DNA of 64,000 nucleotides, taken from contig OX337235.1 in NCBI GenBank assembly GCA_946965045.2, positions 3,410,001 through 3,474,000 of the forward strand, in the 5' to 3' direction. The notes under the pieces were generated by a model, which was given only the letters and a program-made list of their open reading frames with translations, was not told the origin of the DNA and did not search any database. This DNA is from Epithemia pelagica. Taxonomy: Eukaryota > Protista > Bacillariophyta. How positions within the stretch are numbered: position 1 is the stretch's first letter; each line of letters opens with the position of its first letter. A program made the position numbers and the translations under genes. Positions 36,242-39,722 of this stretch are shown here, piece by piece.

Positions 36242-36403
36242 GGAATCTTTGGCTGGCATGCGATGCACGCACGCCAGGCCGGAATTTATGCGAACGAAAC
36301 GCGAGAAAAGGGTACTTCGAGTCGCTGTTACTGTGGACAATACACCCACGGATCACGAATACTACACCGTCTATGGGTAACTCCTTTGGCTGGAGGGATT
36401 TGG
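36242..36403 (+). repeat. Direct repeat copy A (partner 38092-38239)
   Basis: Shared blocks in the same order and orientation in both copies: GGAATCTTTGGCTG, ATGCGATGCACGCACGCC, GTCGCTGTTACTGTGGA, CCGTCTATGGGTAA, CCTTTGGCTGGAGGGATTTGG. Confidence 0.85.
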
Positions 36404-36727
36404 CAGGACTTGAAAGGTGTAAAACTACTTTTTGAATTCAATGCACATCATCTCCCGACATGGGTTTAGGCAGACACACATGGTTCATCCAACAGCTGAA
36501 TCAGGGTGCGCACGAACGCCAGATCTCGACGGGTGACTTAGGACCTTCAAGGAAGGTCTGTACCAAATCCGGTGGACATGGCACCCCGTGGCGTGCCGTC
36601 ACATTGGAGGTCGTCCCTCCCCACTGTCAACCGCCACAACATTTCAAGGGGAGGTCCATGAAGACTTCTTGGGAACGGATTACCGATGAAGCCTTCAAAT
36701 CTTGGCTTCTACAGGCCATGACGATTG

Positions 36728-37216
36728 ATGAGTACAAATGACAACGTTTTGTGTCCTCCCAGACATCGTCGCCAACTGTTGGGGTTCGAGGAGTTGAAGA
36801 AGCGGACCGGTGGCATGGTACTGTGTGAATTCATGTTGATTATGCAGGCATCGGCCATTATCTTGACGATGTGCGGCGTCGTCAAGGAGTTGTTGAATAT
36901 CGGCATTGGCATGGCCTTTGACGAACTCATAGCTCGGAGGACGATGATCTGGTTCAGGCCAATAATTGTCCGCTTGGCACAATTCGCCAATGAATCCGAC
37001 AATGCCCCCTTTTATGCTTCAAAATCTACATGCTACCATTCCGCGGCGCCGTCGATCTGCCTTTTCAAACTCGCCCAATTGTACCAGCAATTGAACTGGT
37101 TCTTGTCCGACCCAGTCATTAACGAACTGTACGGAGAACAAATCGTGCGCGACGAGAATGGCAACGTCGCGCATCATCAACACCCGCATCAGCTTGAGCA
37201 ACCAGGCCAATGGTAA
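36728..37216 (+). CDS. Hypothetical protein, possibly the 3' part of a frameshifted gene starting ~36460
   Basis: 162-aa ORF with coding-like C/G third positions, overlapped upstream by a short ORF in another frame. No family recognised. Confidence 0.35.
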   Translation: MSTNDNVLCPPRHRRQLLGFEELKKRTGGMVLCEFMLIMQASAIILTMCGVVKELLNIGIGMAFDELIARRTMIWFRPIIVRLAQFANESDNAPFYASKSTCYHSAAPSICLFKLAQLYQQLNWFLSDPVINELYGEQIVRDENGNVAHHQHPHQLEQPGQW

Positions 37217-37350: not shown

Positions 37351-37650
37351 TCAAACGGGCCATGGCTTTCCCTGGGCCATGGCACGCTTGAATAGGTCCG
37401 ACACTTCCTGAGGATACTGCTCATAGAGTTGGTTTGTCTCGCGCAAGAGTTCCCATCCTTCCTTTGCGTGTGGGAGGAGTTTCTTGTTTACAGCGGTATC
37501 GGGAAAGGTCTCCTCATGAACGTGGAGTCCAGCGCGGCTAAAACACTCGCAGCACTCGGCCTCGGTGAGATAATGAATTTTCTGCAGATCGGCATACCAG
37601 CGCTTGCTTTTCTCCATAAAGTCAAGAACCAGTTGGTGCTTGTCCGTCAT
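37351..37650 (-). CDS. Small hypothetical protein (99 aa), downstream partner of the VapD-like ORF
   Basis: ATG 37650 (MTDKHQLVLDFMEKSKRWY...) to TGA 37351, helical-looking. The longer 183-aa track ORF begins at TTG, and its Ser-rich 5' part is the shadow frame of the VapD-like ORF. Confidence 0.55.
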   Translation of the reverse strand: MTDKHQLVLDFMEKSKRWYADLQKIHYLTEAECCECFSRAGLHVHEETFPDTAVNKKLLPHAKEGWELLRETNQLYEQYPQEVSDLFKRAMAQGKPWPV

Positions 37651-37702
37651 GATGAACTGCGTGTTGTCTTCCGTGTAAAGAGGAGTGCACGTGTCGCATT
37701 CC

Positions 37703-37984
37703 TCACCGGATGGGGACGAAATTGAAACGCTGTTCGTAGTGGAGATGCCGGAATATCCCGACTCCAAACCTTGCTTCAACTGTGGATGCAAAGAGTTGGA
37801 CGGCGAGGTGGAAGACGAAAGGTCCGGCAGCGACATTGTCTGCGCGACAGCAAGATTGCTGGTACCGTGTGAGTCCTTGCTGGTGGAGATTTCGTGCGAC
37901 AAAGTTGTACGCTGTTGACCTTGGAATTCCTTTTGCGTCGATGTAGTTCAGGTTGAGGTCGTACTGGAGGACGAAGTTGGCCAT
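37703..37984 (-). CDS. vapD: VapD/Cas2-like ribonuclease, 93 aa
   Basis: FVLQYDL..G.P..TAY..VARNL..QGL...QQS aligns by eye to H. pylori VapD HP0315 YALAFDL..GEP..KAY..LRQEL..LGF...QGS, and the length is nearly identical. ATG start and strongly C-ending codons. Confidence 0.7.
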   Translation of the reverse strand: MANFVLQYDLNLNYIDAKGIPRSTAYNFVARNLHQQGLTRYQQSCCRADNVAAGPFVFHLAVQLFASTVEARFGVGIFRHLHYEQRFNFVPIR

Positions 37985-38091
37985 TCCATTGATGACAGAA
38001 GCCCTGAAGACGGTGTTGGGAAGGGGTTGTAGTTGTATCTACTCCTAACAACAACAGTTAATCCAACACCCGAAGCGTTTGTTTTCGCTGT

Positions 38092-38239
38092 GGAATCTTT
38101 GGCTGCAATGCGATGCACGCACGCCTCGCCGGAAGACTTTGCGAACGAAGGGTACGTCTAGTCGCTGTTACTGTGGATGCAAATGGACAGACGGATACTA
38201 CGCCGTCTATGGGTAAATCCTTTGGCTGGAGGGATTTGG
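38092..38239 (+). repeat. Direct repeat copy B (partner 36242-36403)
   Basis: Shares the same ordered sequence blocks as copy A, and lies ~110 bp upstream of the VapD-like start codon. Confidence 0.85.
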
Positions 38240-38567: not shown

Positions 38568-39722
38568 TTACGGAGAATCCAGAACAAATACATTGGGTCG
38601 AATGGTTACACCATTGGTTTCCGTAATGATGTTGGTATTGGCAGCAATCATGTTGGCAAAGGTCCACGGGTTCAAATCAATGACACCGGCCGTAATCTTG
38701 GCCAAGTCCGTTTGACTTTGCTCGGCCATGTAAAAATACTCATCGCCATCGCGCAGGCGCACAAATTGTTCCTTCAAGAGTTCGGCCAGGAGTTCTCCCA
38801 CATGCGCTCCTTCCATGTGATCTTCAGCCAAACATCCGACCCACAAATCCATTTGGTCGGGTCCTCCGCAATAGACACTTTCCAAGGCGACTTGCAAGTC
38901 GGGATTGGTTGTCACTTCCGCAAACGACATCTTGGGCGCCAAACCCAAACCTGCCCGCATTTCGTTGTACCGGCAAAGTCCATGATCGCGTCCACGGTGA
39001 ATATTGAGAGCCACCAAGTCAATTCCCTTCGGTCCTCCTTCGGTAGTATTGGCAAACAAGAATTCTCGGACGTCTGGAACGACCTTGGTGTCAATCAATT
39101 CGGCCGGATGCTCGACCAATCCCCACAAAATGTCATCAACCAAGGCCGGGTCATCGTGGAGGAGTTGGGGTCGGAAAAAAAGGTCCCTCAGTGACATGAA
39201 AGTTGGTTCGGGAGGTGTCGTGGTGGTATCGAACCGCCCATAGACGAGTAAATCACCCGACAACATGGTATGACCAAACCGAAAGGCCGCCGTGGCAAAT
39301 TCCACGGACATAAACGGATCCACGTTCTTTTCTTTATCATAGCCGTTATAGCCGCCTTCAGGTGTGACACCTGGGGCTTGTGATCCCATGAGGGTGGGCA
39401 AAAATTCTTCGTACGTGATTTTTTGTATTTGGGCCGAGACAATTTTACGAGCCATGTCATACAAGGCATCATCCCATGCCGCCGTATCCAACTCAGAGGC
39501 ATCTGTGACATGATGCTCCTTGACCATTTGCTGGGCCAGCAACTGGGCCAAACGATTGTGTTCTCGCACAAACAATGTGTGCATGGAAGTTAATCCCAAT
39601 TGTTCATTGACACGTGGATCACCGGCCTTAAACATGAACGACCCGGGAGCCACTACGGGCAACAAGTCTAGATGGCCGTCTTGTGGCGACACAGAAAGTT
39701 TTCCTCGGGAAAAACTGGGTCT
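38568..39722 (-). pseudogene. Animal-type heme peroxidase (peroxidase-cyclooxygenase family), C-terminal portion only
   Basis: SFSRGKL, FKAGDPRVNE, HTLFVREHNRLA, AAFRFGH (proximal His), DLVALNIHRGRDHG and DLWVGCLAE are present. There is an in-frame TAG at 39723-39725 and no recognisable N-terminal distal-His region upstream. Confidence 0.75.

Follow-up and report, generated by a model that had tools for sequence, protein, structure and literature searches.

Toxin-antitoxin modules are a hallmark of prokaryotes. Among them, the bacterial VapD toxins form part of the type II systems VapXD, VapYD and VapWD found in H. influenzae, H. pylori and C. jejuni, in which a catalytic Asp closes beta1 and a catalytic Ser precedes beta3; the two residues are D7/S43 in the H. 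pylori protein and D11/S46 in the C. jejuni protein (PMC11980593). The locus considered here lies in a 64,000-nucleotide stretch of the Epithemia pelagica genome, the window, which covers 3.41–3.47 Mb of contig 8 in a 60.5-Mb assembly of 23 contigs; the locus is referred to as C8. It carries a small gene with remote likeness to VapD and, closely behind it, a second small gene with which it seems to share one mRNA. A full-text literature search combining VapD with diatom retrieved no paper, and by that search nuclear, expressed, multi-copy relatives of VapD in a major eukaryotic algal group have remained undescribed.

Both genes are read from the minus strand. ORF1 (37984–37703, 93 aa, frame F1) starts with the ATG at 37984 and ends with the TGA at 37705–37703, while ORF2 (37650–37351, 99 aa, frame F2) starts with the ATG at 37650, ends with the stop codon at 37353–37351 and lies in the +1 frame relative to ORF1. 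Between them lie 52 nucleotides (37702–37651), and a GTGAGG sequence is placed directly at the ORF1 stop (37706–37701). All these coordinates reproduce those of the original prediction, which had viewed the two ORFs as an operon-like pair. Frame F2, as the original prediction did not notice, contains no stop codon from 37947 downwards, so that its 198 codons span the spacer and most of ORF1; the longest ATG-initiated F2 ORF of the reference allele runs from 37836 to 37351 and encodes 161 aa. Directly upstream of the pair, also on the minus strand, an intronless ORF (38568–39692) encodes an animal-type haem peroxidase (An_peroxidase, Pfam E = 4e-89). A direct repeat of about 150 bp flanks a 1.7-kb segment containing the ORF1/ORF2 cassette and a 163-aa ORF on the plus strand (36725–37216). 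The repeat copy upstream of the minus-strand genes occupies 38092–38239 (+) and the second copy 36242–36403 (+); they align in three blocks of 86–94% identity, with 79% identity overall. These repeats were considered as the termini of a dispersed mobile element and rejected as such, because the genome holds just the two local copies; they represent a local duplication. Elsewhere, on one environmental contig (L026:520-2535), the pair adjoins a PiggyBac-type DDE transposase gene (PF13843).

Taken as a single sequence, ORF1 matches nothing in Pfam, NCBIfam, PADLOC or the PDB sequences. An exhaustive profile search recovered 68 relatives, mostly of 90–100 aa, and a profile of 41 family sequences matched C. 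jejuni VapD (9kan_A) over its full length with E = 2.3e-4, and H. pylori VapD (3ui3) with E = 0.03. One family member is annotated as VapD by IMG. Matches to Cas2 are weaker: five of the 41 members hit Pfam CRISPR_Cas2 (best value 0.0014), the ORF1 of the paralogue C11b matches a PADLOC Cas2 model at 0.024, and the ORF1 of this window falls below the threshold of every Cas2 model. The AlphaFold (AF2) model of ORF1 (pLDDT 68.5) is arranged as beta-alpha-beta-beta-alpha-beta, that is, as the ferredoxin-like beta1-alpha1-beta2-beta3-alpha2-beta4 fold of about 90 residues. In a Foldseek search with this model the top TM-score belonged to H. pylori VapD (3ui3_A, TMq 0.70, rmsd 2.8), with weak E-values of 0.09–0.2. 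Asp9 (in LQYDL) and Ser44 (in QQS) are invariant across the family alignment, and the profile alignment places them on the Asp of FDL and the Ser of QYS in VapD 9kan, so the conserved Asp and Ser of the VapD/Cas2 superfamily are present in the ORF1 family. The family profile, the Foldseek result, the fold and the D9/S44 pair support the VapD-like character that the original prediction had assigned to ORF1, and point to a divergent, eukaryote-associated branch of the VapD/Cas2 superfamily, remotely related to the bacterial proteins and predicted to be a nuclease. Nuclease activity and a homodimer whose subunits build the catalytic cleft are further traits of that superfamily.

More distant ORF1 relatives were detected in a giant virus (Sylvanvirus), in a tick protein and on large contigs. 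On the Sylvanvirus MAG contig (L029:2501-3230) a VapD-like gene of 107 aa is followed in the +1 frame by a gene of 142 aa, the two overlapping by 23 nt. The 142-aa gene was considered as an ORF2 homologue and rejected (hhalign probability 0.3%). A second candidate, the +1-frame gene that follows an ORF1 relative on L033, bears no likeness to ORF2 either, and the frame is interrupted before that gene. In the tick Amblyomma americanum a protein of 2213 aa (KAK8759549.1; P0088) is matched by the ORF1 profile in three stretches, best in residues 1580–1641 (E = 5e-10), and may represent a domain array or a contaminant. The Sylvanvirus relatives suggest a possible route of transfer.

The partner, ORF2, appears to be a new all-helical domain, judged from its sequence and its model. 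The AF2 model of the 99-aa domain shows four helices with a pLDDT of 91.6. The single sequence has no match in Pfam, NCBIfam, PADLOC or the PDB sequences, and no fold match was obtained in Foldseek searches of the PDB, in the ESM Atlas or in a wide structural search. A word search found 53 homologues, none with a Pfam domain on record, and the only named sources among them are the diatoms Licmophora paradoxa (MMETSP1360) and Entomoneis sp. CCMP467 (MMETSP0725). The domain was not found in prokaryotic genomes in a search whose sensitivity was limited to two peptide patterns. No likeness to VapX, VapY or VapW was seen, so homology of ORF2 to the known VapD antitoxins is not indicated. The ORF2 domains fall into two subgroups. 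Group A includes this locus, C11a, C18, L002, L025 and L026, with a linker carrying MTD(K)H; group B includes C11b, C2, C6, C7, C16, L019-L024, L030 and L031, with a linker that combines a basic, nuclear-localisation-like patch (KKKRK-like) with a conserved PTExHLKIR. In one further place (C16:1606289-1606528; L016, or C16b) the ORF2 domain forms the C-terminus of a 274-codon open frame whose N-terminal region is unrelated and which lacks ORF1; this looks like an orphan partner gene.

The pairing of the two genes exceeds a chance neighbourhood, as judged by comparison of the loci. Nineteen pairs were examined, seven in this genome and the others on environmental contigs (L002/L003, L019-L026, L030, L031 and the AT-rich L034); beyond its seven pairs the genome holds three ORF2-like matches, namely the degenerate pair C7, the ORF2-only C16b and a weak fragment on C17. 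Conservation among paralogues and other strains had been proposed as a check on the pair, and seven copies in the genome together with the independent environmental contigs bear it out. It had been anticipated that homologues might turn out to be single fused proteins or might never carry ORF2; ORF2 is present and no true fusion was found. Four apparent exceptions were discarded: P0048 and P0073, supposed in-frame fusions, are broken copies in which TGA was miscalled as Trp, while P0053 and P0010, considered as natural fusions, are broken frameshifted copies.

At every locus examined ORF2 lies in the +1 frame of ORF1. Measured from the ORF1 stop, the conserved AKxGW motif lies at 12 distinct distances between 211 and 310 nt, all of them 1 mod 3; the chance that 12 independent spacer lengths fall into one class is about (1/3)^11, a figure that does not allow for shared ancestry. 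Between the ORF1 stop and the ORF2 domain F2 is free of stops in all loci except the decayed C16, and the indels that separate the spacer of this locus from those of L025, L026, C18 and L002 are multiples of 3. A non-coding spacer is rejected, since frames would drift in it, yet all 12 distances are of the same class. The spacer of 52 nt, taken by the original prediction for an intercistronic gap, is thus coding in the +1 frame and continuous with ORF2. Group-B linkers contain no ATG at all, and L021 has no Met in its linker or ORF2 domain until the last four residues, which excludes initiation of a second cistron 52 nt downstream as the general mechanism.

The pattern of substitutions agrees with two genuine proteins. 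L025 and L026 are close relatives of this locus and were compared with it; substitutions per site between C8 and L026 amount to 0.29 at position 3, 0.15 at position 1 and 0.06 at position 2 of F1 codons in the ORF1 region, and to 0.32, 0.16 and 0.06 at the same positions of F2 codons after the ORF1 stop. Because the substitutions follow F1 in the ORF1 region and F2 behind the stop, both proteins are likely to be real. In the overlap, the third positions of F1 double as second positions of F2, and they evolve at nearly the rate of genuine synonymous sites; the part of F2 that overlaps ORF1 therefore shows no constraint on its amino acids. F2 is open across ORF1 in 10 of 11 loci; its openness was considered as proof of dual coding and dropped, as synonymous shuffles gave probabilities of an open frame of 0.2–0.89 per locus and showed it to be mostly a by-product of C-ending codons.

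The original prediction had asked whether one mRNA spans both ORFs. For related diatoms the answer is positive: in the MMETSP transcripts the two lie on a single unspliced mRNA, since the long F2 ORFs traverse the ORF1 region. In the Entomoneis transcript and in environmental contigs (e.g., P0034, P0026) the long ORF is F2 running uninterrupted across the ORF1 region, and in the Licmophora transcripts (P0016, P0031) it begins at an F2 AUG inside that region. The adjacency and co-expression typical of type II toxin-antitoxin genes are therefore seen as single transcripts in Entomoneis and Licmophora. At this locus the read contigs, from three DNA-like runs and one metatranscriptome contig, show no joints; the sole metatranscriptome contig is 181 nt long (37838–38018) and covers the 5' end of ORF1.

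How, then, is ORF2 translated? We propose that one unspliced mRNA would yield two proteins in the overlapping frames F1 (ORF1) and F2, and that F2 would start upstream of the ORF1 stop, at an AUG adjoining that of ORF1. This F2 AUG would lie 5–23 nt upstream of the ORF1 AUG in group A and 10 to 58 nt downstream (+10 to +58) in group B. Scanning ribosomes would pick between the two neighbouring AUGs (leaky scanning), and the part of F2 overlapping ORF1 would serve as a Ser/Thr-rich leader of unconstrained sequence. The overlap on the mRNA would thereby take the place of the bacterial operon in coupling expression. That ORF2 is part of an overlapping +1 ORF reached by leaky scanning from an AUG near that of ORF1 is, on the arrangement of start codons and frames, a reading to which we give an even chance and which the original prediction had not considered. 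The statistics behind it were computed without correction for shared ancestry. The next ATG after that of ORF1 is in F2, with the frame open to the ORF1 stop, in 13 of 15 loci (shuffle probabilities 0.14–0.89), so that the arrangement expected for leaky scanning, a weak first AUG followed by a next AUG with an open frame, is seen in 13 of the 15 and in part at this locus. Group A has an extra F2 ATG in good context 5–23 nt upstream of the ORF1 ATG; in group B all ORF1 AUGs carry C at +4 and all F2 AUGs a purine at -3. The Asn codon at position 18 of ORF1 is AAT, which creates an F2 ATG at +52, in 8 of 13 cases, compared with 21 of 83 Asn codons elsewhere. The clearest locus is the AT-rich L034 (33% GC), in which T at -3 and C at +4 make a weak context for the ORF1 ATG, all frames are free of ATG over the following 213 nt (3.2 expected; synonymous-shuffle P = 0.003), and an ATG of A/G context 74 nt before the ORF1 stop opens the ORF2 homologue (hmmsearch 5e-9). 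Two loci count against leaky scanning. L031 has a TAA in F2 after its ATGs and no later ATG, with ORF1 and ORF2 both open; its ORF1 has lost the near-invariant Tyr26, and the copy may be decaying. The other is the reference allele at this locus: its ORF1 AUG has G at both -3 and +4, a strong context, and a TGA cuts short the frame opened by the upstream F2 AUG.

The alleles at this locus bear on its start codons. In the reference allele an upstream ORF in the F2 frame (37989–37948, minus strand), whose ATG lies 5 nt upstream of the ORF1 ATG, is a homologue of the relatives' upstream F2 start and is closed by TGA after 13 codons. The site of the family's conserved F2 start at +52 (37932–37930) reads AAAGG and holds no ATG, codon 18 of ORF1 being AAA, and the first ATG after that of ORF1 is at 37836. 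In the reference allele F2 would start at 37836, giving 161 aa, or at 37650. The read contigs reveal another allele or strain in which 37989 T>C removes the ATG of the upstream ORF and 37931 T>A, changing Lys18 of ORF1 to Asn, creates the +52 ATG of the family and with it an F2 ORF of 193 codons. The same allele or strain lacks 24 nt of the 5' flank of ORF1 through small deletions clustered at 38031–38062.

Three other explanations of the second frame were weighed against leaky scanning. The original prediction allowed for a 1-nt indel that breaks one gene, and a single gene split by such an indel or by an assembly error, or joined by a small intron, would account for the GTGAGG directly at the stop and for ORF2 being in the +1 frame. 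The comparative data speak against it so clearly that we regard it as having next to no chance: the position of the stop and the +1 offset are identical at every locus and in several organisms, many loci lack GT at the stop, and the transcript-derived ORFs run through unspliced, in line with the absence of joints in the read contigs. The intronless reading of the locus stands, and the indel is discarded. Of the other mechanisms that had been named, a +1 frameshift has kept some plausibility, while the classical picture of two cistrons has not, given group-B linkers without any ATG. A programmed +1 ribosomal frameshift at the ORF1 stop would produce either the 93-aa protein or a VapD-like/linker/ORF2 fusion of about 210 aa. 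It would suit the universal +1 relation, an F2 open immediately past the stop, the ATG-free linkers of group B, the closed upstream F2 of L031 with both of its domains open, and the constant end of ORF1, which always terminates at the same Arg or Arg-Pro before the stop. The RNA at the C8 junction also folds better than shuffled sequences (z = -3.0). Yet no conserved shift site is seen: the last sense codon varies (CGG, CGC, CGT, CGA, AGA, CCG or CCC), and the stop, either TGA or TAA, usually has a purine behind it. Nor is any downstream structure conserved, with z near zero in three of four loci (-0.27, 0.15 and 0.36). A purine after the stop codon makes a strong termination context. In more than 20 loci no lineage has resolved the shift into an in-frame fusion, and frameshifting explains neither the AAT bias at codon 18 nor, in L034, the stretch devoid of ATG and the strong AUG of F2. 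We consider this mechanism unlikely. The junction RNA itself (37600–37712, minus strand; -32.8 kcal/mol) forms a hairpin over the stop codon that is not conserved in the three other loci.

The third explanation, independent initiation of the 99-aa ORF2 at the ATG at 37650, by reinitiation, internal entry or a second promoter or transcript, could apply to group A only. The Met of MTD.H is kept in most group-A copies (C8, C11a, C18, L025, L026, P0034, P0013), and the 99-aa domain is predicted to fold on its own with high confidence. Set against this, ATG is absent from the linker and the early part of the domain in group B, L002 lacks this Met, and the 52 nt upstream behave as coding, with in-frame indels only. 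Moreover, three ATGs precede 37650 in C8 (ORF1's own, +148 and +285), and ORF1 would act as an upstream ORF of 93 codons. An upstream ORF of this length is long for eukaryotic reinitiation. Independent initiation is therefore, in our judgement, quite improbable, and leaky scanning into an overlapping F2 is the reading followed below.

In function, the pair would be comparable to a toxin-antidote module or a type II toxin-antitoxin system, with ORF1 as the nuclease and ORF2 as its obligatory partner. This role is inferred by analogy, from the VapD-like fold and catalytic-type residues, the strict coupling to the partner, the many copies of varying integrity and their asymmetric decay: ORF1 is broken and ORF2 open in four copies (C11a, C7, C6, C16), the reverse in none, a pattern that resembles the decay of a toxin-antidote pair. 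A predicted complex of ORF1 and ORF2 scored 0.01 and was counted neither for nor against binding. Alternatively, the two could be subunits of a nuclease or nucleic-acid-processing complex, or ORF2 could be a targeting or regulatory subunit. Such a role finds some encouragement in the lack of likeness of ORF2 to any known antitoxin, in the KKKRK basic patch and PTExHLKIR of the group-B linkers, and in the ORF2 domain that exists without ORF1 (C16b); the sister family Cas2, too, is a scaffold and not a toxin (PMC11980593). The invariance of the catalytic-type Asp and Ser, the loss of ORF1 while ORF2 is kept, and the multi-copy, patchy occurrence of the family, which recalls selfish or defence modules, argue in the other direction, and we hold the non-toxin role possible but somewhat doubtful. 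The more far-reaching toxin-antidote reading is likewise tentative: true toxin-antidote modules, derived from prokaryotic or giant-virus VapD/Cas2 nucleases, might be present in diatoms and in at least one further organism, AT-rich and presumably eukaryotic. The reading frame of one partner would be fully overprinted on that of the other, tying the two to a single mRNA that would have to supply both, possibly with an antiviral or selfish role.

If the overlapping-frame mechanism is correct, a eukaryote keeps two proteins coupled both genetically and translationally without an operon, by overlapping frames on one mRNA, and the pair would be a compact case of dual coding or recoding in diatoms. 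With ORF2, the VapD/Cas2 superfamily would gain a new family of helical partners. Should the reading of toxin-antidote overprinting also hold, the pair would be a eukaryotic counterpart of the toxin-antitoxin operon, possibly serving antiviral defence or acting as a selfish element.

Compared with known systems, the pair shares features with several and coincides with none. With VapXD, VapYD and VapWD it has in common a ferredoxin-like fold of about 90 aa, the Asp at the end of beta1 and the Ser in the beta2-beta3 region, and a small adjoining partner gene that is co-transcribed. Unlike in those bacterial systems, the likeness of ORF1 to VapD is seen only with a family profile (E = 2e-4) and the gene sits in a eukaryotic nucleus. 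Its partner follows downstream, whereas in bacteria the partner precedes the toxin gene, and the partner is all-helical, whereas VapX and VapY are SH3-like barrels and VapW is a dead VapD. Coupling seems to be achieved by overlapping reading frames here and by an operon in bacteria. The pair also differs from Cas2 (PF09827) systems, as neither Cas1 nor a CRISPR array came to notice beside any copy in an analysis directed at the pair itself. Programmed +1 frameshifting is known from antizyme, bacterial RF2 and Euplotes genes, which show the same conserved +1 relation over a stop and an open +1 frame directly after it; in contrast to them, ORF1/ORF2 has no conserved slippery or P-site codon, stop context or stimulatory RNA structure. 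Polycistronic nuclear loci of green algae provide examples of leaky-scanning, dual-coding mRNAs. Like these and the leaky-scanning mRNAs of plant viruses, the diatom pair would give two proteins per capped mRNA from a weak first and a stronger second AUG, with no AUGs in between, most clearly in L034. It departs from the known leaky-scanning mRNAs in that no more than about 60 nt separate the two starts and that, in most copies, the second ORF overlaps the whole of the first in the +1 frame.
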